The position numbers were made by a program, and so were the translations under genes. From Mobula hypostoma (lineage: Eukaryota), in NCBI RefSeq assembly GCF_963921235.1, contig NC_086110.1, positions 13,330,001 through 13,394,000 of the forward strand: a stretch of 64,000 bases of DNA, given 5' to 3'. Below the pieces are notes generated by a model, which searched no databases, was not told where the DNA came from, and was given only the letters and a program-made list of their open reading frames with translations. Positions 20,951-59,709 of the stretch are shown piece after piece. The first letter of the stretch is position 1. The number at the start of each line of letters is the position of its first letter.

Positions 20951-20967
20951 TTACCACCCTTCTTCCC
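20951..20967 (-). promoter_or_regulatory. Polypurine tract of the Gmr1-like element
   Basis: GGGAAGAAGGGTGGTAA immediately precedes TGTAAC of the 3' LTR. Confidence 0.8.
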
Positions 20968-25366: not shown

Positions 25367-25384
25367 ATCCCACCACTGCCACCA
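25367..25384 (-). promoter_or_regulatory. Primer-binding site, tRNA-Leu
   Basis: TGGTGGCAGTGGTGGGAT, 2 nt inside the 5' LTR, complementary to the vertebrate tRNA-Leu 3' end (..AUCCCACCACUGCCACCA). Confidence 0.85.
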
Positions 25385-26379: not shown

Positions 26380-26650
26380 GCCTCGGACGTGGACTGCACG
26401 CTCAGAGCCTTGAGCGTGGACTGGACGCTCAGAGCCTTGGACGTGGACTGGACGCTCAGAGCCTTGGACGGGGATTGGACGAGGTACTCCGGGGCAGGAC
26501 GGGGCTGTTGGACTCGTCTTAATTGGGCACTTGGGTACGGGACCTGGATTTCTCCTTGGAGCACGGGGCCGGGACCCTTACTAGGACGCAGGGCCGGGAC
26601 CCTTACTAGGACGCAGGGCCGGGACCCTTTTTTGGACGCAGGGCCGGGAT
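26380..26650. repeat. 27-bp and 25-bp minisatellites inside the solo LTR
   Basis: About 3-4 copies of GGACGTGGACTGGACGCTCAGAGCCTT, then about 3 copies of GGACGCAGGGCCGGGACCCTTACTA. Confidence 0.85.
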
Positions 26651-29264
26651 GGTTTCTTGGACGCGGGGCCAGGATGACTGCCGAGGATACTTGCCGAGGT
26701 AAACTGCCGAGCATTCGGATGGGGACGATCCAGAACAGGACGAGGAATGTCCGGTACCTGGCTGGGCGAGGCACATGGACTGGAAGTGAATACGAAGCTC
26801 AGACTTAGACAGGGCTGGAACACGGCTCCTGGACTTGGTCTTGGAACACAGGAACACAGAGCCTTGGACTTGAGCACAGGAACATAGAACAAAGAGACAG
26901 GACCCCTCCTTGGGGACAGGGCATAGGGTTAAGACTCGTACACAGAACACAGAGCTAAGTCTCCTCCTTGGGAACAGGACTTAGGGCCGTGGCTCTACCC
27001 AGAGTCAGGACCCCTCCTTTGGAACAGGACCTAGGGCTGGGACCCTTCTTTGACATGGACACTAACACAAGGGCACAAAGAGACAGTTCTAAACTCAACG
27101 ATAGATAGTTCTTTATCTTGACGTGGCAAGGCGCCGGTCTCACGCCGGCGGTGGAGCTAGACGGCGATACAGGCGAGGACGCAGGGGAGGTTGCAGGCAA
27201 GGTAGCAGGCGAAGGTAACAGACGAAGATTACAGACGAAGGTTAGTGCCGAAGTAACTGTTGAGATGAACCGCCAAAGTAACTGCCAGGGGAGGGGAAGG
27301 GAAAAGTCCAGCAGGGAATCCTTGGTTTGAGAGATATGTATGTGCCAGCCCGCAACGAGAATCGGGATCCTCAATTAAGGCACCCAACAGAACAAGGGAG
27401 AAAACAGGAAAACCCGGAACAAGGATGGGTGGACCGGACCATGAACAGGAATGCGGACTTCACGGACCAGACCATAACACTCAAGTTCCTTCTATGTTTG
27501 ATATGTGCAGGTCATTTATACACCTCAACCCTCTAGATATCATCCTATGATGGAATGGTAAACCAATAATGTACATGGCCTCCTCCTGTAGAATTTCCCA
27601 AATATTCCCATGATCTGGAAGACGGAGAGCTGCTGCAGATAATATTGTTCTGATATCTTCCCAAGATTACTAATAGGTTCTGCTGGGTTGCAACTCACAA
27701 CATAATTAACACAAATTGAACAACAGAGAAGAAAAGTAAATATAGAAGGTTTTGGAAATACCCCATTAGTTTGGCACCTTCTGTGGAGAAAAAGTAGGCT
27801 GGGGAGCATTCACCACGCAGTAAACTCGAAAAATCTTAATCTGACATTTTCCACAGCTGCTTCCTGAGTTGGTGTGGACTCTAAATTTGCTTCCATCCAC
27901 ACTCAGCTCATGCACAGCAAATACTACCCAGCTTATTTGCTACCTTGTTTTTTCGTATTTGTCATTTATAAATATCATGAAACTTCGCGATCCTAGAACA
28001 AACTCCAAATGGTCGCCAATTAGCCAATTAGTACAATATGAGTATTTTTTTTCCTGAATAGCATCTCTCAAGCCTTCACGCTCGAACAATTTCAACATTT
28101 AACTCAAAAATTATCTTCAATTCTCATTTTGTTCATCGACTCTGCTGTGGAACAGTTCTGATACGCTTTGACAATGCAGTATTAAATAAATGTACCATGA
28201 TAAAATGTCAGCATTCACAATTTCAATATAACTTTTTTTTTAACTGAGATTGCGAAGATTTCTTCCGTATTTAAAGTTAAACATTTAAAAAAAACTTTTC
28301 TCCACATTCCATATCTCTGCTCTTGTTAGTATACAGATGATAACACGGTAACACTTAATTCGCCATTTAGCATTCCGAGAATTTAAAAGGACAGAAAATA
28401 CTAGGCATATATAAGCAATACTTCTCTAGCATTTTTTTAGGATTTGTGCTTACATTCATACAAGGCAATTTGTCCTTCTCAATATCTTATCATAAACTTA
28501 AGTGATATCACTTAAATTCCGACGGGCAACTGCTTTAGCTGGAAATTATCGACAATATTTCCAGCTGGACGTTTTCACAATACATTTGTTCGGCGGATTA
28601 TAAGAGAGTTTTTCTCCTGGCATTGACTTTATTTTGTCTAGTTCAGTTCTGATGAAAGGTTTCGGTCTGAAACGTCGACTGTTTATTCATTTCCATAGAT
28701 GTTGCCTAAGGTGCTGAGTTGCTTCAGCGTTTGGTGTACTGCAGCTCTGCATTTTCAACAACTGCAGAAAAGCTTGTGTCTATAAATTTTATCCTGCCTA
28801 GGGTGACAAATCGCAATTATACAATGCTCATCGAAAAATATTCGAATATTTAAAACAGGTATTTAAGTGATATAAAAATGGTTGATATATATGTGTTCTT
28901 GAATGACATATCCTGAGTACAGAAACACATACTTTTCAGAAATTGCTTTACAAGTAGTTTACTTAAGTTAACTTTCTTACTTTTCACTTAAACGTTAAAC
29001 GCGATAACGTGGGTATCTGCAACTTACTCGCCTGAGACGGTGAAACTTCTGACCGCATAGAGTTTCCATGATGTCACCAGCTAACCGTGAGTGCAGTTAC
29101 TTTGCTCTCTATGCTGTCTCGTTTAGCAAAGACATTTTGTACTGGGTGCATCTTGTCATTGCAAAAGTAGAAAAGTTCGCCCTTGAGGATTTATAATCGT
29201 GTTTCACATGCAGAATATGTGCCTCTTTCGGCAAATAATTTACATTTCCATCACCAAACACAAC

Positions 29265-38019: not shown

Positions 38020-39759
38020 TATTGTGGTAAGGGGGAATATAGATGGAAATGCAGTTACTTTATTGAATATATATGCACCCCGAGGAAGTGATATTAGGTT
38101 CTTCCAGAAAATTAGTAATATTATGCTAACAGAAACAGAAGGTCTCTTGATCTGTGGCGGAGACATAAATTTACAATTACAACCAAAGTTAGACTCTTCC
38201 AACAGAAAAAAGTTATGAAACTAAGTCCTTACATAAGAAAGATAACAATCTTTTTGAGAATGTTGGTCTAATTGATATATGGAGGGACCTCTTCCCCGAC
38301 AGAAGGGATTGCACTCATTATTCTGCCGTCCCATTCCATATATACAAGGATAGACTATTTCATAACATTAGGAAAAGATATAGACTAAATAAGTACCTGT
38401 GGAATTGGGACAATAGATGTAAGGGACCATGCACCTATATATTTATCTGTTGATTTTGACGTACAACCAAAGAATACTATTTGCAAACTAAATTCAAGTC
38501 TACTCAATGATCCCCATTTCAGGGAACAAATCAAAAAAGAAACTGGTCTTTACTTAGAATTCAGTGATAATGGAGAGGCTTCTCCTCCCATTCTATGGGA
38601 TACTCTGAAGCCTGTCTTAAGAGGGAAAATTTCAGCGATATCTTCATATAAAGGAAAAATAAGGAATAAATCATCAGAGGAATTACAAAATAAGCTGAAG
38701 GATCAAGGAAAACACAAATTGAGTTTGGCACAGGATACACTGCAGGAAATTTTTAAAAATGGAATGAAATTAATAGTTTGGTTACACAAGAAATTAGAAA
38801 AAAATAATCTTTATGAAACAGAAACACTATGAAAGTGGATCAAAATCAATGAAAATACTGGCGTGGAAACAGAAAAAAAAAAGATAACGGAAAATACTCA
38901 AAACTCTATATTCCAAAGTTCCAGGGGGAAGTATAACCCAAATTGACACCTTCCTGAATTCTTTAGAGCTACCCACTTTAAGTAAAGAACGGAATAGAAC
39001 GATGACTGTTACCATAACTGAAGCTGAACTAAGAACTACAATTAGTAGGCTAAAATTAAGAAAGTCACCAGGATCAGAGGGGTATACGGCAGAGTGGTAT
39101 AAAGAGTTTAGAAGTGAATTAATTACCATTTAACTCCCCACACTGAACAGGACCCTAAGAAAGGTGCAAATGCCACGCATCTGGAAGGAGGTGATAATCT
39201 CAGCTATATCGAAAGAATGTCATAAGATGGTGGCTGAGAACGAACCCAAGTGAAAGACACAGACACTGAAGTATTAGGGACATGACTAGGATACAGGCTG
39301 ATGGCAAGGACACGGACACGAAAACCAGGAACCTGGAATAGAACTGCACAAGGGAGCTAGGAGCCCGAGCTTGGACTCCGAGCCAGAAACTGGACAAGGA
39401 ACCAGTACCTGAGTCTTTCCTCAGGCCTGGACCCCAGAACCAGGCAAGGACGAAGCTTGGCAGGCAGGCAGGATGAGGTTGCAGTCTTAGAGACTTGAGG
39501 CGAGGCTTGGCAGGAGGCAGGAGACTTCACTCGAGGCTTGGCAGGGGGCGTGGACCGAGCCAGAGAGTGGACAAGCATCCAGTACCTGGGTCCTGCCTCT
39601 GGCTCGGACCCCAAAACGAGGCAAGGACCAGGCTTAGCTAGCAGGCAGGACGAAGCTGGAGTCTTAGAGACTTGAGGCAAGGCTTGGCAGGAGGCAGAAG
39701 ACTCGAGGCGAGGCTTGGCAGGAGGCTAGAGGCGTGAGGCGAGGCTTGGCTGGAGGCTA

Positions 39760-40390
39760 GAGACTTGAGGCTAGGCAGGAGGCTGCAGTCTTCAAGCTTG
39801 AGGATAGGCAGAAGGCTGCAGTCTTCGGGCTTGAGGATGGGCAGAAGGCTGAAGTCTTCGGGCCTGAGGCTAGGCAGGAGACTGAAGTCTTCAGGCTTGA
39901 GGCTAGGAAGGAGGCTGGATTCTACAGGCTTGAAGATAGGCAGGAGGCTGCAGTCTTCAGGCTTGAGGATAGGCAGGAGACTGGAGACTTCAGTCTTGAG
40001 ACTAGGCAGGAGGCTGCAGTCTTCATGCTTGAGGCTAGGCAGGAGACTGGAGACTTCAGTCTTGAGACTAGGCAGGAGGCTGCAGTCTTCATGCTTGAGG
40101 CTAGGCAGGAGACTGGAGTCTTCAAACTTGAGGCTATGCCGGAAGCTGCAGTCTTCAGGCTTGAGGCTAGGCAGGAGGCTGCAGTCTTCATGCTTGAGGC
40201 TATGTCGGAGGCTACAGTCTTCAGGCTTGAGACTAGGCAGGAGGCTGCAGTCTTCAGGCTTGAGGCTAGGCAGGAGACTGGAGACTTCAGGCTTGAGACT
40301 AGGCAGGAGGCTGCAGTCTTCATGCTTGAGGCTAGGCAGGAAGCTGGAGACTTCAAGCTTGAGGCTAGGCAGGAGGATGGAGTCTTCATG
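39760..40390. repeat. 33-bp minisatellite in the U5 of array LTR1 (variable copy number in every LTR)
   Basis: Consensus AGGCTTGAGGCTAGGCAGGAGGCTGCAGTCTTC. It gives the 11-aa periodic ORFs (RLEARQEAAVF)n. Other blocks lie at ~41740-42130, 43370-43700, 45070-45480, 46845-47510, 48500-48900 and 50175-50720. Confidence 0.95.
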
Positions 40391-41252
40391 CTTGAGAGTA
40401 TCTTAGCTCCTCCGGGGCAGTGCGCGGTACTCCTGGGCAGGGCGCGGTTCAGCACCCGACGGAGGCATAGAAGAGGAAGGGACAGAACCAACCGCAGGTA
40501 ACGGCGACACGGCCTGGCTTACCCGACGGAGGTAAAGGACAGGAAGGGACAGAAGCAACCGCAGGTAACGGCAAGACCGGTGTGGAGGCAAGGGACAGGA
40601 AGGGGGGCAAGGTACATGATGGCTGCATGACAAGACTGCAGGCGAGACGAGGCTAGAGGTACCAGCAAGAAAAGGTAAGGCTTCAGGCAATGCAAGAAGA
40701 GACGGAAAATTCAGGCGAGCAGAGAGTTACCAGCAAGACAAGGCAGTGCTTCAGGCGAGGAAACAAGAGGGCCTGGTTTACTTGTCCGGAGGCAAGGAGC
40801 AGGAAGGGAGCTAGGTACAGGGTGGCTCCAGGACAAGACTGCAGGCGAGACGAGGCGAGAGTTACCAGCAAGACAAGGCAAGGCGTCAGGCAATGCAAGA
40901 CTAGACGAGAACTTCAGGTGAGGGGAGAGTTACCGGCAAGACAAGGCAAGTCTTCTGGCAAAGCAAGGCGAGACGGGAACTTCAGGCGAGCCGAGAGTTA
41001 CCGGCAAGACAAGGCAGGGCTTCAGACGAGGAAACAAGAGGCAGAGCGAGGGATACAAGAAGCAGGACAAGAACAATCCAGCCGCCACGCCCTGGTCTCT
41101 GAAGGTATTTATGCAGGCTGCCCCAACCTGCATCAGCTGACTCAATTAGAGCTCAACAAGAACAGCAACAGGGTAGACAGGAAAACCTGGAGCAAGGATC
41201 GATGGACCGGACAGTGAAATGGAATACGGACTTAACGGACAGGACAATGTCA

Positions 41253-41424
41253 GTACCACCCACCCCACCCCACGCCTCAACGGGAGCCTCGGGCGACCAA
41301 ACATGGTATCCAGACTATCGACTACCCGGGCGGGTGGGAGGGTATTGAACCAAAAGGAAACCCATGTGGCAAGAGGAAAACGACAGTGTCTTTGTCCCTG
41401 GGTCCATGGTTGGGTGGATTGTTC
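41253..41424 (-). other. Mini internal domain: self-priming PBS, gag-like start, chromovirus 3' end, PPT
   Basis: Minus strand: GAACAATCCACCCAACC-ATGGACCCAGGG (30-codon ORF MDPGTKTL..)..GGTCGCCCGAGGCTCCCGTTGAGG-CGTGGGGTGGGGTGGGTGGTAC|TGACA. Confidence 0.8.
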
Positions 41425-44400
41425 TGTCATATGGTGGTGGCTGGGAGCGGACCCAAGTGCAAGACACAGACACTGAAGTACTAGGGACAGGACAAGGATG
41501 CAGGCTCATGGCAAGGACATGGACACGAAAACCAGGAACCTGGAACATCACTGGACAAGAGAGCTAGGAGCCCGGGCTTGGACTCCGAGCCAGAGACTGG
41601 ACAAGAAACCAGGAGGGTCTTGCCTCTGGCTGGAACCCCAGAACCAGGCAAGGACGAGGCTTGGCTGGCAAGCAGGACAAGGCTGGAAACTTAGAGACTT
41701 GAGGCGAGGCTTGGCAGTTGGCTCGAGACTTGAGGCTTGAGGGTAGGCAGGAGGCTGCAGTCTTCAGGCTTGAGGCCAGGAAGGAGGCTGGAGTCTTCAG
41801 GATTGAGGGTAGGCAGGAGAATGTAGTGTCCAGGCTTTAGGCTAGGAAGGAGGCTGGAGTCTTCACGCTTGAGGATAGGCAAGAGGCTGCAGTGCTCAGG
41901 CTTGAGGCTAGGAAGGAGGCTGCAGTCTTGAGGCTTGAGACTAAGCAGGAGGATGGAGTATCAGGCTTGAGGCTAGGCAGGAAGATGGAGTCTTCAGGCT
42001 TGAGACTAAGCAGGAGGATGGAGTATCAGGCTTGAGGCTAGGCAGGAGGCTGGAGTCTTCAGGCTTGAGGCTAGGCAGGAGGCTGGAGACTTCAGACTTG
42101 AGGCAAGGCAGGAGGCTGGAGTGTTCAGGCTTGAGGGTAGCTGAGCTCCTCCGAAGCAGGGCGCGGTACTCCTGGGCAGGGCGCGGCTCACCTGGGCAGA
42201 GCGCGGATCACCTTGTCAGGGCGCTGTCCTCCTGTGCAGGGCGCGGTACCCCTGGGCACTGCGCCGTTCACCACCAGATGGAGGCATGGGACAGGTTGGG
42301 ACAGAACCAACCGCAGTTAACGGCGAGACGGCTTGGCTTACCCGACGGAGGCAAGGGATAGATAGGAAGGGACGTAACCAACCGCAGGTAACGGCAAGAG
42401 GGCCTGGTTTACTTGTGCGGAGGCAAGGGGCAGGAAGGGAGCTAGGTACAGGGTGGCTCCAGGACAAGACTGCAGGCGAGACGAGGCGAGAGTTACCAGC
42501 AAGACAAGGCAATGCTTCAGGCAATGAAAGACTAGACGAGAACTTCAGGTGAGGGGAGAGTTACCGGGAAGACAAAGCAAGGCTTCTGGCAAAGCAAGGC
42601 GCGAATGGAACTTCAGGCGAGCCGCGAGTTACCGGCAAGGCAAGGCAAGACTTCAGGCGAGGAAACAAGAGGCAGAGGAAGGGATTCAAGAAGCAGGACA
42701 AGAACAATCCAACCGCCATGCCCTGGACTCTGAAGGTATTTATGCAGGCTGCCCCAACCTGCATCAGCTGACTCAATTAGAGCTCAACAAGAACAGCAAC
42801 AGGGTAGACAGGAAAACCTGGAGCAAGGATCGATGGACCGGACAGTGAAATGGAATACGGACTTAACGGACAGGACAATGTCAGTACCACCCACCCCACC
42901 CCACGCCTCAACGGGAGCCTCGGGCGACCAAACATGGTATCCAGACTATCGACTACCCGGGCGGGTGGGAGGGTATTGAACCAAAAGGAAACCCGTGTGG
43001 CAAGAGGAAAACGACAGTGTCTTTGTCCCTGGGTCCATGGTTGGGTGGATTGTTCTGTCATATGGTGGTGGCTGGGAGCGGACCCAAGTGCAAGACACAG
43101 ACACTGAAGTACTAGGGACAGGACAAGGATGCAGGCTCATGGCAAGGACATGGACACGAAAACCAGGAACCTGGAACATCACTGGACAAGAGAGCTAGGA
43201 GCCCGGGCTTGGACTCCGAGCCAGAGACTGGACAAGAAACCAGGAGGGTCTTGCCTCTGGCTGGAACCCCAGAACCAGGCAAGGACGAGGCTTGGCTGGC
43301 AAGCAGGACAAGGCTGGAAACTTAGAGACTTGAGGCGAGGCTTGGCAGTTGGCTCGAGACTTGAGGCTTGAGGGTAGGCAGGAGGCTGCAGTCTTCAGGC
43401 TTGAGGCCAGGAAGGAGGCTGGAGTCTTCAGGATTGAGGGTAGGCAGGAGAATGTAGTGTCCAGGCTTTAGGCTAGGAAGGAGGCTGGAGTCTTCACGCT
43501 TGAGGATAGGCAAGAGGCTGCAGTGCTCAGGCTTGAGGCTAGGAAGGAGGCTGCAGTCTTGAGGCTTGAGACTAAGCAGGAGGATGGAGTATCAGGCTTG
43601 AGGCTAGGCAGGAGGCTGGAGTCTTCAGGCTTGAGGCTAGGCAGGAGGCTGGAGACTTCAGACTTGAGGCAAGGCAGGAGGCTGGAGTGTTCAGGCTTGA
43701 GGGTAGCTGAGCTCCTCCGAAGCAGGGCGCGGTACTCCTGGGCAGGGCGCGGCTCACCTGGGCAGAGCGCGGATCACCTTGTCAGGGCGCTGTCCTCCTG
43801 TGCAGGGCGCGGTACCCCTGGGCACTGCGCCGTTCACCACCAGATGGAGGCATGGGACAGGTTGGGACAGAACCAACCGCAGTTAACGGCGAGACGGCTT
43901 GGCTTACCCGACGGAGGCAAGGGATAGATAGGAAGGGACGTAACCAACCGCAGGTAACGGCAAGAGGGCCTGGTTTACTTGTGCGGAGGCAAGGGGCAGG
44001 AAAGGATCTAGGTACAGGGTGGCTCCAGGACAAGACTGCAGGCGAGACGAGGCGAGAGTTACCAGCAAGACAAGGCAATGCTTCAGGCAATGAAAGACTA
44101 GACGAGAACTTCAGGTGAGGGGAGAGTTACCGGGAAGACAAAGCAAGGCTTCTGGCAAAGCAAGGCGCGAATGGAACTTCAGGCGAGCCGAGAGTTACCG
44201 GCAAGGCAAGGCAAGACTTCAAGCGAGGAAACAAGAGGCAGAGGAAGGGATTCAAGAAGCAGGACAAGAACAATCCAACCGCCATGCCCTGGACTCTGCA
44301 GGTATTTATGCAGACAGCCCCAACCAGCATCAGCTGACTCAATTACAGCTCAACAAGAACAGCAACAGGGTAGACAGGAAAACCTGGAGCAAGGATCGAT

Positions 44401-47400
44401 GGACCGGACCGTGAAGTGGATTACGGACTGAACGGACAGGACCATGTCAGTACCACCCACCACACCCCACGCCTCAACGGGAGCCTCGGGCGACCAAACA
44501 TGGTATCCAGACTATGGACTACCCTATTGAACCGAAAGGAAACCCGGGTGGCAAGAGGAAAACGACAGTGTCTTTGTCCCTGGGTCCATGGTGGGGGTGG
44601 ATTGTTCTGTCATATGGTGGAGGCTGGGAGCGGACCCAAGTGCAAGACACAGACACTGAAGTACAAGGGACAGGACTAGGATGCAGGCTGATGGCAAGGA
44701 CATGGACATGAGAACCAGGAACCTGGAACAGGTCTGGGCAATAGAGCTAGGAGCCCGGGCTTGGACTCCAAGCCAGAGACTGGACAAGAAACCAGGAGGG
44801 TCTTGCCTCTGGCTCGAACCCCAGAACCAGGCAAGGACGAGGCTTTGCTGGCAAGCAGGACAAGGCTGGAAACTTAGAGACTTGAGGCGAGGCTTGGCAG
44901 GATGCAGGAGACTTGAGACGCGGCTTGGTAGGATGAAGTCGACTTGAGGCGAAGCTTGGCAGGAGGCAGGAGACTTGACACGAGGCTTGGCAGGAGGCAG
45001 GAGACTTGACACGCGGCTTGGCAGGAGGCAGGAGACTTGAGGCGAGGCTTGGCAGTTGGCTCGAGATTTGAGGCTTGAGGGTAGGCAGGAGGCTGCAGTC
45101 TTCATGCTTGAGGCCAGGAAGGAGGCTGGAGTCTTCAGGCTTGAGGACAGGCAGGAGGCTGCAGTGTTCAGGTTTGAGGCTAGGAATGAGGCTGGAGTCT
45201 TCAGGCTTGAGGGTAGGCAGGAGGCTGGAGCCTTCAGATTTGAGACTAGGCAGGAGAATGGAGTGTTCAGGCTTCAGGCTAGGAAGGAGGCTGGAGTCCT
45301 CACGCTTGAGGATAGGCAGGAGGCTCCATTCTTCAGGCTTCAGGATAGGCAGGAGGCTGGAGCCTTCAGGTTTGAGGCTAGACAGGAGGCTGCAGTGTTC
45401 AGGTTTGAGGCTAGGAAGGAGGCTGCAGTCTTCAGGCTTGAGGCTAGGCAGGAGGCTGGAGTCTTCAGGATTGAGGGTAGCTGAGCTCCTCCGATGCAGG
45501 GCGCGGTACTCCTGGGCAGGGCGCGGCTCACCTGGGCAGAGCGCGGATCACCTTGTCAGGGCGCTGTCCTCCTGTGCAGGGCGCGGTACCCCTGGGCAGT
45601 GCGCCGTTCACCACCAGATGGAGGCATGGGACAGGTTGGGACAGAACCAACCGCAGTTAACGGCGAGACGGCTTGGCTTACCCGACGGAGGCAAGGGATA
45701 GATAGGAAGGGACGTAACCAAACCGTAGGTAACGGCAAGAGGGCCTGGTTTACTTGTGCGGAGGCAAGGGGCAGGAAGGGAGCTAGGTACAGGGTGGCTC
45801 CAGGACAAGACTGCAGGCGAGACGAGGCGAGAGTTACCAGCAAGACAAGGCAATGCTTCAGGCAATGCAAGACTAGACGAGAACTTCAGGTGAGGGGAGA
45901 GTTACCGGGAAGACAAAGCAAGGCTTCTGCCAAAGCAAGGCGCGAATGGAACTTCAGGCGAGCCGAGAGTTACCGGCAAGACAAGGCAAGACTTCAGGCG
46001 AGGAAACAAGAGGCAGAGGAAGGGATTCAAGAAGCAGGACAAGAAGAATCCAACCGCCATGCCCTGGACTCTGAAGGTATTTATGCAGGCAGCCCCAACC
46101 AGCTTCAGCTGACTCAATTACAGCTCAACAAGAACAGCAACAGGGTAGACAGGAAAACCTGGAGCAAGGATCGATGGACCGGACCGTGAAATGGATTACG
46201 GACTGAACGGACAGGACAATGTCAGTACCACCCACCACACCCCAAGCCTCAACGGGAGCCTCGGGCGACCAAACATGGTATCCAGACTATGGACTACCCT
46301 ATTGAACCGAAAGGAAACCCGGGTGGCAAGCGGAAAACGACAGTGTCTTTGTCCCTGGGTCCATGGTTGGGTGGATTGTTCTGTCACATGGTGGAGGCTG
46401 GGAGCGGACCCAAGTGTAAGACACAGACACTGAAGTACAAGGGACAGGACTAGGATGCAGGCTGATGGCTAGGACATGGACACGAGAACCAGGAACCTGG
46501 AACAGGTTCTGGACAAGAGAGCTAGGAGCCCGGGCTTGGACTCCGAGCCAGAGACTGGACAAGAAACCAGGAGGGTCTTGCCTCTGGCTCGAACCCCAGA
46601 ACCAGGCAAGGACGAGGCTTTGCTGGCAAGCAGGACAAGACTGGAAACTTAGAGACTTGAGGCGAGGCTTGGCAGGATGCAGGAGACTTGAGACGAGGCT
46701 TGGTAGGATGAAGTCGACTTGAGGCGAAGCTTGGCAGGAGGCAGGAGACTTGACACGAGGCTTGGCAGGAGGCAGGAGACTTGACACGCGGCTTGGCAGG
46801 AGGCAGGAGACTTGAGGCGAGGCTTGGCAGTTGGCTCGAGACTTGAGGCTTGAGGGTAGGCAGGAGGCTGCAGTCTTCAGGCTTGAGGCCAGGAAGGAGG
46901 CTGGAGTCTTCAGGCTTGAGGATAGGCAGGAGGCTGCAGTGCTCAGGTTTGAGGCTAGGAAGGAGGCTGGAGTCTTCAGGCTTGAGGGTAGGCAGGAGGC
47001 TCCATTCTGCAGGCTTGAGGCCAGGAAGGAGGCTGGAGCCTTCAGATTTGAGACTAGGCAGGAGAATGGAGTGTTCAGGCTTCAGGCTAGGAAGGAGGCT
47101 GGAGTCTTCACGCTTGAGGATAGGCAGGAGGCTCCATTCTTCAGGCTTCAGGATAGGCAGGAGGCTGGAGCCTTCAGGTTTGAGGCTAGACAGGAGGCTG
47201 CAGTTTTCAGGTTTGAGGCTAGGAAGCAGGCTGGAGTCTTCAGGTTTGAGGGTAGGCAGAAGGCTGCAGTCTTCAGGCTTGAGGATAGGCAGGAGTCTGG
47301 AGCCTTCAGATTTGAGGCTAGGCAGGAGAATGGAGTGTTCAGGCTTCAGGCTAGGAAGGAGGCTGGAGTCTTCACGCTTGAGGATAGGCAAGAGGCTACA

Positions 47401-50400
47401 GTGCTCAGGCTTGAGGCTAGGAGAAAGGCTGCAGTCTTTAGGCTTGAGACTAAGCAAGAGGATGGAGTATCAGGCTTGAGGCTAGGCAGGAGGCTGGAGT
47501 ATTCAGCATTTAGGCTAGGCAGAAAGCGAAGCTGGGCAGGGCGTGGCTCACCTGGGCAGAACGCGGATCACCTGGTCAGGGCACTGTACTCCTGGGCAGG
47601 GCGCGGTACTCCTGGGCACGTCGCCGTTCACCACCAGATGGAGGCATGGGACAGGTTGGGACAGAACCAACCGCAGGTAACGGCGAGACGGCTTGGCTTA
47701 CCCGACGGAGGCAAGGGATAGGAAGGGACGTAACCACCGCAGGTAACGGCAAGAGGGCCCGGTTTACTTGTGCGGAGGCAAGGGGCAGGAAGGAAGCTAG
47801 GTACAGGGTGGCTCCAGGGCAAGACTGCAGGCGAGACGAGGCGAGAGTTACCAGCAAGACAAGGCAGGGCTTCAGGCAATGCAAGGCGAGACGAGAACTT
47901 CAGGTGAGGGGAGAGTTACCGGCAAGACAAGGCAAGGCTTCTGGCAAAGCAAGGCAAGAATGGAACTTCAGGCGAGCCGAGAGTTACCGGCAAGACAAGG
48001 CAGGGCTTCAGGCGAGGAAACAAGAGGCAGAGGAAGGGATACAAGAAGCAGGACAAGAACAATCCAGCCGCCACGCCCTGGTCTCTGAAGGTATTTATGT
48101 AGCCAGCCCCAACCAGAATTAGGTGACTCAATTAGAGCTCAACAAGAACAGCAACAGGGTAGACAGTCTTGCCTCAGGCCCGGACCCCAGAACCAGGCAA
48201 GGACGAAGCTTGGCAGGCAGTCCTAGAGACTTGAGGCGAGGCTTGGCAGGAGGCAGGAGACTTCACTCGAGGCTTGGCAGGGGGCGTGGACCGAGCCAGA
48301 GAGTGGACAAGCATCCAGTACCTGGGTCCTGCCTCTGGCTCGGACCCTAGAACCAGGCAAGGACAAGGCTTAACTAGCAGGCAGGACGAAGCTGGAGTCT
48401 GAGAGACTTGAGGCGAGGCTTGGCAGGAGGCAGGTGACTCGAGGCGAGGCTTGGCAGGAGGCTAGAGGCGTGAGGCAAGGCTTGGCTGGAGGATAGAGAC
48501 TTGAGGCTAGGCAGGAGGCTGCAGTCTTCAGGCTTGAGCCTAGGCAGGAGGCTGCAGTCTTCAATCTTGAGGATAGGCAGAAGGCTGCAGTCTTCGGGCT
48601 TGAGGCTAGGCAGGAGGCTGAAGTCTTCGGGCTTGAGGCTCGGCAGGAGGCTGCAGTCTTCAGGCTTGAGGCTAGGCAGGACGCTGGATTCTTCAGGATT
48701 GAGGGTAGGCAGGAGGCTGCAGTCTTCAGGCTTGAGGCTAGGCAGGAGACTGGAGACTTCAGGCTTGAGACTAGGCAGGAGGCTGCAGTCTTCATGCTTG
48801 AGGCTAGGCAGGAGACTGGAGTCTTCAAACTTGAGGCTATGCCGGAGGCTACAGTCTTCAGGCTTGAGGCTAGGCAGGAGAATGGAGTCTTCAGGCTTGA
48901 GAGTATCTTAGCTCCTCCGGGGCAGTGCGCGGTACTCCTGGGCAGGGCGCGGTTCAGCAGCCGACGGAAGCATAGAAGAGGAAGGGACAGAACCAACCGC
49001 AGGTAACAGCGAGACGGCCTGGCTTACCCGACGGAGGTAAAGGACAGGAAGGGACAGAAGCAACCGCAGGTAACGGCAAGACCGGTGCGGAGGCAAGGGA
49101 CAGGAAGGGGGCAAGGTACATGATGGCTGCATGACAAGACTGCAGGCGAGACGAGGCGAGAGGTACCAGCAAGAAAAGGTAAGGCTTCAGGCAATGCAAG
49201 GCGAGACGGGAACTTCAGGCGAGCAGAGAGTTACCGGCAAGACAAGGCAGTGCTTCAGGCGAGGAAACAAGAGGGCCTGGTTTACTTGTGCGGAGGCAAG
49301 GGGCAGGAAGGGAGCGAGGTACAGGGTGGCTCCAGGACAAGACTGCAGGCGAGACGAGGCGAGAGTTACCAGCAAGACAAGGCAAGGCTTCAGGCGAGGA
49401 AACAAGAGGCAGAGGAAGCGATACAAGAAGCAGGAGAAGAACAATCCAACCGCCACGCCCTGGTCTCTGAAGCTATTTATGCAGGCAGCCCCAACCAGCA
49501 TCAGCTGACTCAATTACAGCTCAACAAGAACAGCAACAGGGTAGACAGGAAAACCTGGAGCAAGGATCGATGGACCGGACAGTGAAATGGAATACGGACT
49601 TAACGGACAGGACAATGTCAGTACCACCCACCTCACCCCACGCCTCAACGGGAGCCTCGGGCGACCAAACATGGTATCTAGACTATGGACTACCCTGTTG
49701 AACCGAAAGAAAACCCGGGTGGCAAGAGGAAAACGACAGTGTCTTTGTCCCTGGGTCCATGGTTGGGTGGATTTTTCTGTCATATGGTGGTGGCTGGGAG
49801 CGGACCCAAGTGCAAGACACAGACACTGAAGTACAAGGGACAGGACTAGGATGCAGGCTCATGGCAAGGACATGGACACGAAAACCAGGAACCTGGAACA
49901 GGTCTGGACAAGAGAGCTAGGAGCCCGGGCTTGGACTCCGAGCCAGAGGCTGGACAAGAAACCAGGAGGGTCTTGCCTCTGGCTCTAACCCCAGAACCAG
50001 GCAAGGACGAGGCTTCGCTGGGAAGCAGGACAAGGCTGGAAACTTAGAGACTTGAGGCGAGGCTTGGTAGGATGAAGTCGACTTGAGGCGAAGCTTGGCA
50101 GGAGGCAGGAGACTTGACATGAGGCTTGGCAGGAGGCAGGAGACTTGAGGCGAGGCTTGGCAGTTAGCTCGTGACTTGAGGCTTGAGGGTAGGCAGGAGG
50201 CTGCAGTCATCAGGCTTGAGGCCACGAAGGAGGATGGAGTCTTCAGGCTTGAGGATAGGCAGGAGGCTGCAGTATTCAGGTTTCAGGCTAGGAAGGACGC
50301 TAGAGTCTTCAGGCTTGAGGGTAGGCAGGAGGCTGGAGCCTTCAGATTTGAGGCTAGGCAGGAGAATGCAGTGTTCAGGCTTCAGGCTAGGAAGGAGGCT

Positions 50401-51714
50401 GGAGTCTTCACGCTTGAGGATAGGCAAGAGGCTGCAGTGCTCAGGCAGGCTTGAGGCTAGGAAGGAGGCTGCAGTCTTTAGGCTTGAGACTAAGCAGGAG
50501 GATGGAGTATCAGGCTTGAGGCTAGGCAGGAGGCTGGAGTATTCAGCCTTGAGACTAAGCAGGAGGATGGAGTATCAGGCTTAAGGCTAGGCAGGAGGCT
50601 GGAGTCTTCAGGCTTGAGGCTTGGCAGGAAGCTGGAGACTTCAGGCTTGAGGCTAGGCAGGAGGCTGGAGAATTCAGGCTTGAGGCTAGGCAAGAGGCTG
50701 GAATCTTCAGGCTTGAGGGTAGCTGAGCTCCTCCGGAGCAGGGCGCGGTACTCCCGGGCAGGGCGCGGCTCACCTGGGCAGAGCGCGGATCACCTGGTGA
50801 GGGCACTGTCCTCCTGGGCAGGGCGCGGTACTCCTGGGCACGGCGCCGTTCACCACCAGATGGAGGCGTGGGACAGGTTGGGACAGAACCAACCGCAGGT
50901 AACGGCGAGACGTCTTGGCTTACCCGACGGAGGCAAGGGATAGGGAGGGACGTAACCAACCGCAGGTAACGGCAAGAGGGCCTGGTTTACTTGTGCGGAA
51001 GCAAGGGGCAGGAAGGGAGCTAGGTACAGGGTGGCTCCAGGACAAGACTGCAGGCGAGACGAGGCGAGAGTTACCAGCAAGACAAGGCAAGGCTTCAGGC
51101 AATGCAAGGCGAGACGAGAACTTCAGGTGAGGGGAGAGTTACCGGCAAGACAAGGCAAGGCTTCTGGCAAAGCAAGGCAAGAATGGAACTTCAGGCGAGC
51201 CGAGAGTTACCGGCAAGACAAGGCAGGGCTTCAGGCGAGGAAACAAAAGGCAGAGGAAGGGATACAAGAAGCAGGACAAGAACAATCCAGCCGCCGCTCC
51301 CTGTTCTCTGAAGATATTTATGCAGCCAGCCCCAACCAGAATTAGGTGACTCAATTAGAGCTCAACAATTACAGCAACAGGGTAGTCAGGAAAACCTGTT
51401 GCAAGGATCAATGGACCGGAACGTGAACCGGAATACAGACTAGACGGACGGGACCATGACAAAGAAGGCAAGGAAGAAATTGTATGTGTGACATTTCGAC
51501 CAATATTTGTTCTAAATGTGGATTACAACATATTTACCTCCATCGTGGCCAAACGATGAGAAGAGTAGAGTCGAAACCCAGACTGATACATAATGATCAT
51601 AGAGTTTTATACAACAACGCCAAACACAAGACAATGTACGAAGGACACTTCATATTATTGATCATATAAAATAATTGAAATTCAAGCAATAGTGATAGGA
51701 TCAACACCGGAGGA

Positions 51715-53640
51715 GCATGAGACGTGACTGTTTATGTGTCAGGCCGCCTAAAAGCGGAAGGGTTGAAACTCGCACTGGACAAGTTCCTGCTCTTAAGACG
51801 TCAGTTAACTAAGTCATTCACATAGTCTCCCCGGATGTAGTGGCGACGGATCCATCGAAGATACAGGCGGTAACCACATGGCCAGGGACCAAGAATGTGA
51901 GGGTCGTACGTTCATTCCTTGGATTTTGTGGGTACTACCGGAGATTTGTAAAGGGCCACTCCAGAGTAAGCCATCAGTTGAATGAACTTCTGTATGATTA
52001 CCCTCCCTTAGTGAAGGAAGGTATGGAACAAAGGGAGAAGAAGGCAAGGTTTATCTTCGCTCTTCGGAGCCTTTAGAGGAAAGATGGGATGCAAAGTGTG
52101 AAGAGGCATTTCAGCTGCTGAAGAGTTATTGACTAAAGCACCCTTGCCTGCCTTTGCAAAGCAACAGTTGCCGTATTTATTGCACACAGACGCCAGCCGT
52201 TATGGATTGGGCGGTGTTCTATATCAGGATGAAGATTTTGATTTCTGCCTTGCATATCGGCCTCGAAGTCAAAGCAATGATGCGGCTGCGTTGTCACGAA
52301 GTTCTCATGAGGTGCCGGCAAAAGACTGAGAGTGGGAGGACGCTCCTGTCTCTGGTATTAAGGCAATGTGCCAGTTTTCCACAGCTGGGGAATCAGAGCA
52401 CAGACTTTAGCCTGATACAGCGATGATTATTTGGGAGCTTCGAACCATGCCATTCCCTAAGTATATTGCAACTTGACCGCGCTGAATACGAAGAAGCTGC
52501 TCGCCTCGAGTACTTCGGATTTGGCAGCAGCTCAGCAAGCCGACACTTGTAAAGCTGCCTTCTAGTTTTCTGTTGTCAAGGTCGTTATGGGCGCAGTTGA
52601 GAAGACAAAACACCCTGCCATGCCCATACCTATGAGGAAATGGGACAAACTGGACTTGAGGAACAAAGCTTTACACAGTGTTCCATTTCACCCAGATAGA
52701 CCTCGACGTTCCCAGTTGCGTTTCCCTGAAAGAAATATTCGAAGATTGTACTGAAGTCACTTTAGGTCATTTGGCATTTGCTAAGACTTCCGGATTAGTC
52801 CAAGATCGGTTTTATTGGACACGAGTGAAGCCTGAAGTTGAAAAGTACTGCACGTCGTGCATCCAATGCATTCGGAGGAAGACGCTGCCCACCAGAGTTG
52901 TCTGTTAGACGCTGCCTTTATCTCATTTACAAAGAAATGGATCACTTGTCAGTGTGTGTATGGAATTCCTGTCCATGGAGCCTGATTCCAGTAACACTGC
53001 GAACGTCTTGGTCACCACGGACCAATACACCAGATATGCTCAAGCCTTCTCCACTAAGGATCAGAGAGTATCCACAGTTGTCAAAATGTTATGAGATAAA
53101 TATATTATTCATTATGGCCTCCTGAGAAGGATACACAGTAAGCAGGGAAGAGATTTTTAGAGCCTGGTCATATATAAGTTACTCAGCATGCTTGGAGTTG
53201 AGAAGTCAAAGACTACGCCATGTCACTCTTAAGGTGATCCTCAGCCTGAAAGATTCAACAGCACATTGATCGACATGCTTGTGACCCTGGATGCCAACAG
53301 AAAAAAAAAGTGGAGCCAACATATTAGACATTTGATACACTGCTGCAACTGCACACAGAATAAATTGGAGTTGCCGCAGAACACGTATCGGAAGTATGTG
53401 TCTGACGTGAGGAAAGAAATGCAAAAAGCCTATTAGTTAGTAGCAGTTTCTGCTACCAAGCAAAACCAAGGTAAGTTAGAAGAGATATGGTCAAAGAATC
53501 ATATTCTTCCAGTTGATGCCTGGAGAAAGAGTTTGAATAATAAGTTTGGGACTACAAGGGAAGCAGAAGTTTGCCAACCACTGGATTTCTACGGCTTACG
53601 TAGTGGAGAGCCAGATTACAGATTTGCTAGTTATCCGGGT
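51715..53640 (+). mobile_element. Degraded Gypsy pol fragment (RT-RH-IN)
   Basis: VATDPSKIQAVTTWP..VRSFLGFCGYYRRFV; LHTDASRYGLGGVLYQ; integrase core (AFSTKDQR..IHSKQGRDF). Confidence 0.85.
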
Positions 53641-54976
53641 GAAGCCCAGCTCTATAAGACGGTGCACTTTGGAGGCCACCCGAAACTCCGTTCTGCTCAG
53701 GAATCCGCATACTATCTCGTGTCTGATCGAGGTCCTTAATTCATCTCGCAGGTATGGAAGGCCTTCTGTCAAGCCTTAGGTGCCTCGGTCAGCCTGTCTT
53801 CCAGCTTTCACCCACAGACGAACGGGCAAACGGAACGGGTCAACCAGGACTTAGCTACGTTGTATTACAACCAACAATCAATCTACCTGGAGCGACCACC
53901 TCGAGTGGGTTGAGTAAGCCCACAAATCTCTGGTTCGTACTGCCATCGGAAGGTCTCCGTTGAGTACTCCCTTGGGTACCAACCCCCGCTATTCCCGCGT
54001 GAAGAGGAGATTGCGGTGCCGTCTGTTCACGCCCATATCTATCGGTGCCACAAGCTTGACAGACGTACGATCAGCCGATCTCAATAGGAAGATTGCCGAT
54101 CGACACCGAACTCCTGCGCCTCAGTATCGACCTGGGCAGATGGTATGGCTTTCATCCAAAGACATCCCTCTCAAAAACGAGCCTAAGAAACTCACCCCTC
54201 GCTTTCTGGGACTTCTCAAGGTCGAAAATATCGTCAACCCGACAGCAGTCTGAATTAAACTACCAAGATCTATGCACATCCACCCTATTTTTCATGTTTC
54301 CCAATTAAAACCACTTTCCGTCAGCCCCTTGTGTCATATGACCGAAACCCCTCCACCCGCCCCGATCAGCGACAACCATCCGGCATACACCGTCCGACGG
54401 CTACTAGATGTGTGCCGTCACGGCAGGAGACTCCAATACCTGGTCGACTGGGAAGGGTACGGCCCAGAGGAGCGCTCCTGGGTTCCCCGCTTCCTCATCC
54501 TGGACACCTTCCTCATCCAAGACTTCCATCGGGACCATCCGGACAAGCCTGGAGGATCGCCTGGAGGCTTCCGTTTGGACCGAAAACTGTCGTGGTCCCG
54601 TCTGGCAATCCCCATCTTGCTATTACTTCCTTAGTTGGGCCTGAATCCGCTTGTCTGATTTCCAATCATTCCCAGTTCCGCTAATTACAGCCACCTGGTA
54701 CCCACTAGCGAACATAGGATAAAACTCGGGCGGCACAGCCATGCTTTGCCAGTTCGTTGGTCGACTCTAGTGTGAGTAAACCTCGTTTCCTGATTCCTTG
54801 TGACTGTCAGTTCTAAGCTCCACATTATTTCCAGCATACTCTACGTAAACCTTGTTTCCGTGTGAAGACTCTCCTGGATACCGGTTCCCCGTTCGTAGCG
54901 GTGCTAACGCCTCTCGACTCTGCCTCCGCGACTTTGTCCTGCACTTGGGTTCGTCCTCAGCCTCATCTTTGCAACA
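53640..54976 (+). mobile_element. Sushi-like chromovirus 3' fragment (IN, chromodomain, 3' LTR 54588-54976)
   Basis: [27 protein letters not shown]; GQMVWLSSKDIPLK..KLTPRFLG; chromodomain [29 protein letters not shown] runs TGTCGTGG...GCAACA. Confidence 0.9.
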
Positions 54977-55606: not shown

Positions 55607-55738
55607 NNNNNNNNNNNNNNNNNNNNNNNNNNNNNNNNNNNNNNNNNNNNNNNNNNNNNNNNNNNNNNNNNNNNNNNNNNNNNNNNNNNNNNNNNNNNNN
55701 NNNNNNNNNNNNNNNNNNNNNNNNNNNNNNNNNNNNNN
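55607..55738. other. Assembly gap (132 N)
   Basis: Run of N. Confidence 1.
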
Positions 55739-57066: not shown

Positions 57067-59290
57067 CGGGGGGACTTCCGGGTCGTAAAAAAAGAAAGTA
57101 AACTGTCCCAAAATCGAATTGAGACGAATACTTAATATTCCATAACTATATTAATAAAAGGGGCAAGGATGATGTCGAAAAGAAAATTAAAAAGTCCGCT
57201 CCGAAGGCTGATAAACACAAAGAGACGCACCAAGGCGACGGGCCTAGCTCCCCCACGGCAAGCCAGGACGGAGAGAATGAGGGGGAATCGTTGACTCTGT
57301 CTTTGATTCTCGGAAGGATTCGCGAGTTCCGACAAGATAACAGCAAACAGCTGGAAGATATTAAATGAGAAATAGTAAAAACTAACTCGTGGATAGATGA
57401 AACCGAAGCGAGGATTGTTGGAATTGAAGAGAAGCTACAACACGCCGAGGAAGTGATAGCAGAAATGCTAAAGCTGCTAGAGCAGCTCCAGTGGAAACTA
57501 ATAGATCAAGAAGGCCGCTCAAGAAGGGAAAATGTGAGGATTTACGGAGTTCCCGAAGGAACTGAAGGTAAACCCGGTTTGATGATTCCCTTCGTGGAGA
57601 AGTTGCTGAGAGAGAACCTTGATATACCGGCTGCAAAAGACCTACAGATAGAAAGGGCTCACCGCGCGTTGGCACCACAGCCTCCGGCAAGCGCCCAGCC
57701 CAGATCGATTCTGGTCAGATTTCTCAGTTACAGAACGAAGGAAGAGGTGCTTAAACGGGCATGGCAGAAGAAAAGTTTCACGTGGAGCAATTGTAAAATC
57801 AGTTTAGACCACGACTACGCACCGGGGATTCTTGCCAGACGGAAGGAATATACGGAAACACGGAGGGTCCTGAAGGAAAACAACATCAGATTCCAGACCC
57901 TGTATCCAGCTCGGCTGAGAGTCCTTTACGACGAAGGGACAAAAACTTACGCTACGGTGCAGGAGGCAACATTGGACCTGGCGGACCGGGGACTACCTAT
58001 TAAAGTTATCACCCAACCGGAGTCGCTACTGGAGAGGATTCGGCAGAAGACGTGGAAGCCAGTGTGGTGAGGACGCTCCACACGAACCAGAGTGTCAAAC
58101 TACAAGGAAAAGCTGCAAATATTCAGACGCGAAAGTACAGAGAAAACAGATTAATTAAGAGAAATGACTGAAAAGAATAAATCGGACTTAAAGGTAAAAT
58201 GAAAACTGGTAACTGAAAATAAACTAGACGGAATAACTTGAATGATAGCAATATGGTCGAGACACAAACAGGAGACAATTCTCTATGATTATTCAAACTG
58301 CTGAGGGCCCTCTAACACAGGGTGAAGATAGAGGTTATCCCTCTGAACTGAGGCGGGTCGGTGCTCAGGCCTCACTGTGGGAAGTCGGGAAAAATTTTCA
58401 AATGTTACACGTTCAAAAATGTCTAGGGTGTGGTTATATGTCTTGGTTTACTGTTGAGAAGGGATTGCTTACTGTTTGGTTAGAAAAGGAGAGTGTCTTT
58501 TTTCTACTAGAGAAAAATGCAAACTGAATTGGTAAAAATAATTTCCTATAATGTTAATGGGGTTTTGAATCCAATTAAAAGAAGTAAGATTATGTCTAAA
58601 TTGAAAAAAGAGAGGGCACATATAGCTTTCCTCCAAGAAACACATATGAGCCACTCTGAACATGAAAAATTAAAAAGAATGGGCTTTAAGCATATATTTT
58701 ATTCATTATATAAATTGAGTCACAAAAGAGGGGTAGCTACTTTCATATCAAGTACTCTTAATTATGAACATATTTCAGAGATTAAAGACAAAGAAGGACG
58801 GTTTGTAAAAATTACAGGAAGAATAGAAGGTACAGAAATAACATTGCTAAATGTTTATGCTCCTCCAGGTTGTGAATGGTCATTCTATAGACACATTTTT
58901 GATCTAATGGTCAGTTCTCAAGGGGTAGTAATTTGTGGAGGGGATTTTAACATTAGATTAAATCCTGTATTAGATTCTTCAAGAATAGTTACTCAGAATA
59001 AACCTCTGACTCGAAAAATGAATTTATTAATGGAGGAGTTGGGAATTATAGATGTGTGGAGGGAATTACACCCCACTAGTAAAGATTATACACATTACTC
59101 TTTCCCTCATTCAGCCTATTCAAGGATAGACTATTTCTTTATCTTTAATGCAGATAGACTCAGGATAAAAAAAAACTGTAATATTGCAGCAGTTGATCTG
59201 TCGGATCATAGCCCAGTCTCTATGTCTCTAATCCTGGAATGGAAAATGAGGAAAACACTATGGAGGCTAAACTCACATATACTCAATAAC
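57067..59290 (+). mobile_element. L1 5' portion (5' UTR, ORF1, endonuclease of ORF2)
   Basis: Starts GGGGGACTTCCGG. ORF1 DQEGRSRRENVRIYGVPE..IERAHR..PRSILVRF..LYPARL has one TGA near 57366. ORF2 ISYNVNG..FLQETH..NVYAP..GGDFN..SRIDYF..SDHSPV is open for about 260 aa. Confidence 0.92.
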
Positions 59291-59542
59291 CTGGAAGTCC
59301 CTGCCTGGTTCTGGGCAATGCCGAGGCTATGGGTCCATGTCCAGTCTCGGGCTCGGAGTCCAAGCCTTGCCTTCTAGTCGCTGGTTTCTAGGCCTGGTCC
59401 CTCTTTCCCTAGCCCAAGTCTGCGTTCTTGTCGCTGATCCTGGTCTGAGTCCTGTCACGTCTCTACTCTAGTCAAGTCCTGTTCCTTGTACATCAGTGGC
59501 TGTGTCTTGTATTTGGGTCCGTTCCCAGACCCCATTGTGATA
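59291..59542 (+). mobile_element. U5-end fragment of the same LTR family group, in the opposite orientation
   Basis: Reverse complement tgtatcacaatggggtctgggaacggacccaaatacaagacacagccactgatgtacaagg matches the array LTR terminus. Confidence 0.75.
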
Positions 59543-59709
59543 CAAGGGCGTGACCGTTGGGGAGCTATATTTATATCCAATCCTCGCCTGGGTTGATACT
59601 TTCACCTCTGAAAAACGGTCCCCTTTGTTGTGGTCACAGTCGGTGACTTCGAAAGGATTTCGGAGGATAACGGGAAGATCAATTGAAGATAATGGGAAGA
59701 AATTGGTAA

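Follow-up and report, generated by a model that had tools for sequence, protein, structure and literature searches.

The locus described here raises the question of how one retroelement insertion can come to carry seven long terminal repeats (LTRs) in a row, and what kind of element would leave such a structure behind. It lies in a 64,000-nucleotide stretch of Mobula hypostoma DNA (RefSeq assembly GCF_963921235.1, contig NC_086110.1, positions 13,330,001 to 13,394,000 of the forward strand), hereafter the window, in whose coordinates all positions are given. Searches for repeats and tandem repeats, and a BLAST comparison of one unit with the window, delineate a tandem head-to-tail array with unit periods of 1315-2014 bp, which constitutes a single insertion at 39218-51461 consisting of seven LTRs of 1.39-2.04 kb and five spacers of 157-172 bp. 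Our preferred explanation, to which as a whole we assign a probability of about 0.68, is that a coding-less LTR element with a short interior, read from the minus strand of the window and primed by its own transcript, was inserted once, and that the array grew in place afterwards.

The LTR boundaries were placed by pattern search for unit ends, together with repeat finding and alignment. Every LTR start reads TGTCA (TGTCATATGGTGG...), at 39218, 41425, 43056, 44608, 46382 and 49778, and the LTR ends lie at 41252, 42883, 44449, 46224, 49620 and 51461; LTRs and internal regions are annotated on the minus strand, in keeping with the orientation proposed below. LTR1 (39218-41252, 2035 bp), the outer A-type LTR, contains about 22 copies of a 33-bp minisatellite unit and internal duplications of 177 bp and 203 bp. 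Internal region 1 (41253-41424, 172 bp) contains a G-rich tract resembling a polypurine tract (PPT) at 41253-41278 and a candidate self-priming primer-binding site (PBS) at 41412-41424. LTR2 (41425-42883, 1459 bp) is a B/A hybrid and is followed by internal region 2 (42884-43055, 172 bp), 99.4% identical to region 1. LTR3 (43056-44449, 1394 bp) is identical to LTR2 over its first 256 nt and 97.8% identical in the 3′ block, and internal region 3 (44450-44607, 158 bp) is without a 15-bp segment, GGGCGGGTGGGAGGG. LTR4 (44608-46224, 1617 bp) and internal region 4 (46225-46381, 157 bp) precede LTR5 (46382-48166, 1785 bp), which has about 24 copies of the 33-bp unit and is truncated at its 3′ side, lacking the last 72 nt or so in plus coordinates. 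It is fused to the 5′-truncated LTR6 (48167-49620, 1454 bp), which is missing about 195 nt at its start and in its middle shows 96% identity to LTR1. At this junction, the only one without a spacer, LTR5 stops at 48166 and the sequence resumes at about LTR position 195, so that a single deletion of about 430 bp appears to have taken the LTR end, the spacer and the following LTR start. Internal region 5 (49621-49777, 157 bp) has one substitution in the PBS candidate (TGGATTTTTC), and LTR7 (49778-51461, 1684 bp), the outer B-type LTR, closes the array. The mutual identity of the spacers is 94-99%.

The outer ends of the array read AAGAA/TGTCA...TGACA/AAGAA (left junction cgaAAGAA/TGTCATAAGATGG..., right junction ...GGGACCATGACA/AAGAAggc), with a 5-bp target duplication on both sides, the left copy at 39213-39217 and the right copy at 51462-51466. 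When the array and one AAGAA are taken out, the flanks form one frame of open reading frame (ORF) 2 of a long interspersed nuclear element (LINE), ...IISAISKE/GKEEIVCVTFRPIFVLNVDY...; the left part (38201-39217, plus strand) translates as ...WKEVIISAISKE with its last codon complete at 39217, and the right part (51467-51800, plus strand) resumes at 51467 in the same frame as GKEEIVCVTFRPIFVLNVDYNIFTSIVAKR. We take the flank motif to be the N-terminal reverse transcriptase (RT) motif of an L1-type ORF2, and the part upstream of it presumably corresponds to the end of the endonuclease domain. The host LINE is decayed and contains several stops. Pfam gave no RT match for its short, stop-ridden pieces beside the junction, another LINE RT in the window aligned with it too weakly to be usable, and no second copy that might represent the empty site exists within the window. 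The long ORFs of the array fall in minisatellites, and the six longest gave no Pfam match above the curated cut-off; an Rfam scan and a tRNA scan of the window also gave no matches. The preliminary description of this DNA had proposed a coding-less unit in a seven-LTR array with LTRs of 1.4-2.0 kb at a single integration site, and an interrupted LINE frame rejoining across an AAGAA duplication. The repeat finding, pattern search, alignments, duplicated target, translated flanks and Pfam results bear these points out. The spacer sizes that it gave are right, the number of spacers being five and not six owing to the LTR5-LTR6 fusion; its TGTCA/TGACA ends apply to the outer ends of the array, TGACA being found only at the outermost end (LTR7) and TGTCA at all five internal LTR 3′ ends.

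An expansion introduced by the assembly is an unlikely source of this structure. From LTR1 to LTR7 the 33-bp minisatellite copies number about 22, 13, 11, 16, 24, 12 and 19, the 15-bp segment is present in two spacers and missing from three others, the 177-bp and 203-bp duplications are common to LTR1 and LTR6 and found in no other LTR, and no N occurs inside the array. The array stretch is also represented in contigs from four public runs made from this species; these contigs are short, none spans the array, and the runs may represent the assembly's own individual. Exact contigs reach a depth of 12.5-18 where the sequence is specific to LTR1, and two contigs from the near-identical units of the LTR2-to-LTR3 stretch reach 22-27; these depths fit the assembled copy number. 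The idea that only some units, mainly the near-identical units 2 and 3, were added during assembly draws on the 98-100% identity of the LTR2 and LTR3 units over long stretches and on the absence of a long read across the array. Given the differences among units in minisatellite copy number and spacer indels, the depth of about 13 on LTR1-specific sequence against 22-27 on the two LTR2-to-LTR3 contigs, and the gap-free array, we attach very little probability to it.

The arrangement of sequence states along the LTRs points to the way in which the array arose. Of the 36 sites that distinguish the outer LTRs in the first 256 nt, 28-31 show the LTR7 state in the internal LTRs; in the 3′ block these LTRs keep the LTR7 state for about 290 columns and then show the LTR1 state for the last 165-200 nt or so, LTR5 and LTR6 having other switch points. 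The first 256 nt of LTR1 are 85-87.5% identical to the other LTR starts, which are 94.5-100% identical among themselves, and the last 93 nt of LTR7 are 83-84% identical to the other LTR ends, which are 94.6-100% identical among themselves. To judge from these mosaics, middle LTRs that combine the 5′ part of the right LTR with the 3′ part of the left LTR are the signature of unequal crossing-over between the LTRs of misaligned chromatids, and the identity blocks and diagnostic sites agree with an array that sits at one integration site and was reshaped in place. Unequal LTR recombination is also the mechanism cited for three-LTR structures and for arrays of terminal-repeat retrotransposons in miniature, or TRIMs (PMC7215508, PMC6934838). 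The near-identity of units 2 and 3 marks them as products of the latest duplication, and the LTR1-specific features repeated in LTR6 point to an exchange whose breakpoint lay elsewhere. Over 749 alignable positions outside the minisatellites, the divergence between the outer LTRs is about 11%. Assuming that they started out identical, the insertion is old, and the array expanded in roughly the last third of its residence.

Two other origins were considered and rejected. Independent side-by-side insertions were expected to leave adjacent LTR pairs with their own duplications, and none were seen; a young array nested in an old solo LTR was dismissed because neither LTR1 nor LTR7 has an internal terminus or duplication. 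A further possibility is that the array was integrated as a ready-made multimer, derived from concatemeric complementary DNA (cDNA) or from a read-through transcript of an older array, and was later only homogenised. The single duplication around the whole array would be accounted for in this way, and concatenated cDNA is among the mechanisms proposed for Cassandra arrays (PMC7215508). We consider this origin improbable, since units 2 and 3 are near-identical while the others differ by 3-6%, LTR6 copies the LTR1-specific duplications, one junction is a deletion, and a cDNA of 12 kb would probably be large for a chromovirus particle. The unit mosaic and the deletion junction would require exchange in place even if a multimer had been integrated.

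The sense strand of the element is probably the minus strand of the window, as suggested by the PBS complementarity, the spacing of a TATA box, a G-rich tract and a chromovirus-like terminus. On each strand, the sequence beside an LTR was compared with the LTR for stretches that could pair. The minus-strand 10 nt that immediately follow the LTR (GAACAATCCA) are complementary without mismatch to an LTR-internal motif, TGGATTGTTC; a perfect match of at least 10 nt at offset 0 was obtained in 0.14% of 5000 Markov-resampled LTRs. The PBS candidate of the giant-LTR element reads GAACAATCCAGCC, and the putative self-primer and transcript start at 41071-41083 reads GGCTGGATTGTTC on the minus strand. 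With 0-2 mismatches, the motif is present in seven of seven LTRs and the PBS candidate in five of five spacers. At 41414, almost every other family contig from the two species has C, not G, which lengthens the duplex to 12-13 nt. As a separate observation, position 41083 is A, not C, in about 99% of the family contigs. In every LTR the minus strand has an ATAAATA (plus 41106-41112 in the case of LTR1) starting 29-30 nt before the first base of the duplex, which is the usual distance between a TATA box and a transcription start. Also on the minus strand, the G-rich GGGGTGGGGTGGGTGGTAC adjoins the next LTR start, the position of a PPT. In minimum-energy folds of a 1.3-kb minus-strand leader, nt 1-14 of the LTR2 and LTR3 RNAs pair with the PBS candidate.

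The terminus of the element provides a further clue to its affinities. Of the 47 nt that close the giant LTR on the minus strand, 32 are shared with the plus-strand sequence at 54930-54976, in an ungapped alignment co-linear to the final CA. When both strands of the whole window were compared with the LTR terminus, at least 27 of 47 matches were found only in family copies and at 54930-54976 (background 11.5 ± 3). This site is presumably where the 3′ LTR of a plus-strand chromovirus ends, the pol fragments of the chromovirus (51840-54634, plus strand) lying about 300 bp upstream. The chromovirus itself (51840-54976, plus strand) is 5′-truncated and decayed; its fragments match RNase H, Integrase_H2C2, SH3_Tf2-1 and Chromo, and some 370 bp separate its start from the right edge of the array, within the same LINE. 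No protein record matches the chromodomain ORF exactly, and the best 120 of its relatives are at most 71% identical and come from ray-finned fishes where an organism is named. A search for an autonomous partner with matching LTRs recovered none, the two relative contigs examined ending before any LTR. A link between the giant-LTR element and Sushi-group chromoviruses is probable, the 32-of-47 terminal identity being the one tie to a chromovirus pol. Priming by the 5′ end of the element itself, with no tRNA-type PBS, is established for Tf1/Sushi chromoviruses from yeast to vertebrates (PMC4600332, PMC6317226). The present element resembles Tf1, Tj1 and sushi-ichi in having a PBS candidate that abuts the 5′ LTR and is complementary to the predicted start of its own transcript, in its 5-bp target duplication and in an LTR terminus like that of the chromovirus 3.5 kb away in the window. 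Unlike these elements it has no gag or pol, and its self-priming is deduced from sequence alone. The distance from the self-primer to the PBS would be 1.2-1.9 kb here, and is much shorter in Tf1.

Several observations weigh against a self-primed minus-strand element of chromovirus affinity. In the predicted LTR5 and LTR7 RNAs, the 5′ end folds onto the 33-bp minisatellite unit and not onto the PBS candidate. The PPT-like tract is broken by a T and ends in TAC. The mutations in the LTR4 motif and in the PBS candidate of spacer 5 are uncompensated and hence provide no support from covariation, a pattern that fits decay after insertion. Neither AATAAA nor ATTAAA was found on either strand. Family contigs do occur in runs guessed to be RNA, which does not prove transcription, and in these contigs no transcript start, strand or poly(A) was seen. 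The long R (repeat) and U5 (unique 5′) portion of the LTR, 1.2-1.9 kb in this orientation, is atypical, and repeats lie more often in the U3 (unique 3′) portion, which favours the plus strand. The chromovirus copy has neither a 5′ LTR nor a PBS, and only the terminal 50 nt or so of its LTR resemble the giant LTR, the alignment on the U3 side being not significant. With regard to the folding of LTR5 and LTR7, the 33-bp unit (39665-40396 and equivalents in every LTR) contains GGCTGGAGTCTTC, an 11/13 copy of the PBS complement GGCTGGATTGTTC; it may be a decoy or an alternative self-priming site, or the resemblance may be due to chance (rough p about 0.003).

The opposite orientation was evaluated in the same way. 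On the plus strand there is no TGG-type PBS, no complementarity longer than 8 nt and no purine tract, and a plus-strand orientation was rejected for want of a PBS, a PPT and complementarity. A PBS-like look of the LTR start (TA TGGTGGTGG...) is not known to match any tRNA 3′ end and was treated as chance; no tRNA-type PBS lies beside the array LTRs. One could nevertheless conceive of a plus-strand element with a long repeat-rich U3, a TATTTAT box, an R-U5 of about 115 nt and some other priming, or of a DDE-type DNA transposon with short inverted ends. The TATA-like box can be read on both strands, the plus-strand layout is the more typical LTR design, and the 6-nt terminal inverted repeat and the 5-bp duplication would also suit an integrase-like transposase. 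We nonetheless judge both variants highly improbable, given the missing plus-strand signals, the LTR-spacer-LTR periodicity and solo copies, which fit LTR biology, and a terminus homologous to the chromovirus LTR end in the opposite sense.

The giant LTRs of the array belong to a dispersed family. A related solo LTR of about 1.74 kb (20468-20528 and 25798-27479) is bordered on both sides by CTCAA; its main part, 'LTR-B', is annotated at 25798-27479 on the minus strand, and a nested gypsy element separates off its first 61 nt, at 20468-20528. Over roughly the first 210 and the last 180 nt, the solo LTR shows about 70% identity to an array LTR, and the minisatellites between these parts are quite different. 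A third family copy (59297-59544, minus strand) is truncated, retains the conserved terminal 240 nt or so with 35 of 47 matches at the terminus, and has no adjoining interior. In a comparison of contigs from two species with 40950-41669, between 115 and 145 of them in each run turned into unrelated AT-rich flanks exactly at the TGTCA start (41425), and an equal divergence point was found at the LTR start of a sister subfamily beginning TGTCAAAAGGGGGC. The solo LTR with its own CTCAA duplication and the contigs diverging at the TGTCA terminus support the view that these are true LTRs, as was originally proposed, and that their family is dispersed. Of the general features of LTR retrotransposons, TG...CA ends with short inverted termini, 5-bp duplications and a solo LTR are present, with the PBS and PPT as candidates. 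The summed contig depth over the LTR parts is 1e4-1e6, compared with 12-27 for single exact contigs; summed depths are not copy numbers and can be read only as orders of magnitude. They suggest a copy number of thousands or more for the giant-LTR family and, in the two species, perhaps a family size of thousands to tens of thousands of LTRs. In both species, many genomic copies fall into a sister subfamily with an LTR start reading TGTCAAAAGGGGGCG instead of TGTCATATGGTGGTGG (window 41425-41442).

Whether the short-interior form is itself a mobile family is a separate matter. Contigs were aligned to the spacer at an identity of at least 85%, a procedure in which a hole in depth is not proof of absence. 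In the spacer, the 130 nt on the side of the PBS candidate have a summed depth of 1.6e3-1.5e4, and a single-copy contig shares this 130-nt leader and diverges at 41295; the leader is therefore common to elements with a different, probably longer interior. The first 35 nt or so of the spacer, on the PPT-like side, have a depth of 47 in organism A (run X1) and 0 in organism B (run X5), roughly the level expected from the array alone and to be compared with 1e5-1e6 for LTR parts. On these depths, the propagating non-autonomous mini family assumed in the preliminary description is no more than a possibility. The low depth may reflect local shortening, or sister mini elements more than 15% different at this place, or the filtering of low-complexity contigs.

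It is possible, though less likely, that a longer, perhaps autonomous element was inserted and that a local deletion cut its interior to about 172 bp before the array grew, in which case no mobile mini family would exist. The array-level depth of the junction between the LTR end and the adjoining 42 nt (47 in X1, 0 in X5), the occurrence of the other 130 nt of the spacer in about 1e2-1e3 copy-equivalents and the contig that leaves the spacer at 41295 all suit such a deletion. A random deletion would rarely spare exactly the PBS side and the PPT side, and the hole in contig depth proves nothing; we lean towards an interior that was already short at insertion rather than one shortened locally afterwards.

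We propose the following course of events for the insertion of a short, self-primed minus-strand element and the growth of the array in place. A coding-less LTR retroelement would have integrated once into the LINE ORF2, making the 5-bp duplication. Each of its LTRs would comprise a short U3 of about 170 nt with the TATA box, from which transcription would begin at GGCTGGATTGTTC, and an R/U5 enlarged to 1.2-1.9 kb by minisatellites of 33, 20 and 68 bp. The interior of 157-172 bp would hold only two cis signals, a PBS abutting the 5′ LTR and a G-rich tract abutting the 3′ LTR; the PBS would pair with the transcript's own 5′ end in self-priming of the Tf1/Sushi type, with no tRNA, and RT and integrase would be supplied in trans by a Sushi-group chromovirus. 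Much later, with the two LTRs by then about 10-15% diverged, the right LTR of one chromatid would have recombined unequally with the left LTR of the other to give a hybrid middle LTR, and repeated unequal exchanges would have raised the number to seven. A later deletion of about 430 bp would have removed one spacer, and minisatellite slippage would have given each LTR a different length.

Arrays of this general form are known from other organisms. LTR(n)-interior(n-1) arrays have been described for plant TRIMs including Cassandra and Wukong (PMC7215508, PMC4528315), and TDRx_I(x-1) arrays, up to TDR58_I57, for cestodes and bivalves (PMC6934838). In zebrafish, the miniature LTR element LTR-11_DR is represented by 5575 LTRs and 2618 interiors, and 'tandem arrays ... 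are observed' (PMC10886601). The claim that the present array has no described vertebrate equivalent has to be given up in the light of these published LTR-11_DR arrays, only the LTR size being unusual here, and a unit 'turning into a macrosatellite' is a projection from just seven units of 1.3-2.0 kb, macrosatellites being long arrays of kb-scale units that vary in number between individuals. With the tandem TRIMs (Wukong, Cassandra, biv-TRIM, the cestode TRIMs and Helenus LTR-11_DR) the array shares coding-less units, a short interior, LTR-interior arrays, solo LTRs and the attribution of arrays to unequal LTR recombination (PMC6934838, PMC7215508, PMC4528315, PMC10886601). It thus has the absence of coding and the short interior by which TRIMs are recognized, and departs from their miniature size, since LTR-interior-LTR would measure 3-4 kb. 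In TRIMs, LTRs of some 100-350 bp belong to elements usually shorter than about 1.3 kb, whereas the LTRs here measure 1.4-2.0 kb and are packed with minisatellites. A further difference is that the LTRs of Helenus and Cassandra carry RNA polymerase III small-RNA genes and a tRNA-type PBS, in place of which we find an RNA polymerase II-type TATA box and a self-priming PBS candidate. Large retrotransposon derivatives (LARDs) are likewise non-autonomous with long LTRs. They have a long conserved non-coding interior of several kb, and the interior of 157-172 bp seen here falls outside the kb-scale interior of that class. Three-LTR tandem elements such as BARE1 LTR3-I2 (cited in PMC7215508) share the recombination mechanism and the hybrid middle LTR; they stop at two full-length coding interiors, in contrast to the repeated rounds and tiny interior here. 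The array is a large-LTR case of the non-autonomous LTR retroelements that form tandem arrays by unequal LTR recombination, and not a new category.

The locus provides a clean, datable case of a single LTR-element insertion becoming a tandem array of kb-sized units, in which the outer LTR edges preserve the diverged original states and every inner LTR is a right/left hybrid. If self-priming is true, a vertebrate chromovirus can support a parasite that keeps only a promoter, self-primer, PBS and PPT, and minisatellite growth can inflate LTRs several-fold and leave the conserved ends intact. For annotation, this is a high-copy family whose units would be mis-called satellites or unrelated 'LTR' fragments. 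A broader picture, speculative and in its entirety rather unlikely, is that the locus belongs to a very abundant, uncatalogued fish LTR family, coding-less, self-primed and mobilised in trans by Sushi elements, in which the PBS copies of the 33-bp unit could act as a decoy or alternative primer site and change the LTR length at each retrotransposition, and whose long LTRs would be prone to forming arrays of kb-sized units.

The gypsy-type element nested in the solo LTR (20529-25797, minus strand) has 422-bp LTRs, 84% identical, and an AAGAC duplication. Its domains on the minus strand are in the order SCAN/PNMA-like gag, integrase and RT/RNase H, and the position of integrase before RT presumably represents a Gmr1-like arrangement. 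Its PBS, TGGTGGCAGTGGTGGGAT, is located 2 nt after the 5′ LTR and resembles what we take to be a tRNA-Leu 3′ end. This element was considered as the autonomous partner of the giant-LTR element and rejected on account of its different LTR ends and TGG-type PBS. Elsewhere in the window, an assembly gap of 132 N is located at 55607-55738. Two apparently intact LINE ORFs, a 205-amino-acid ORF1-like frame and a 286-amino-acid endonuclease-type N-terminus, occupy 57453-59377 on the plus strand, and a fragment of the giant-LTR family adjoins their end.

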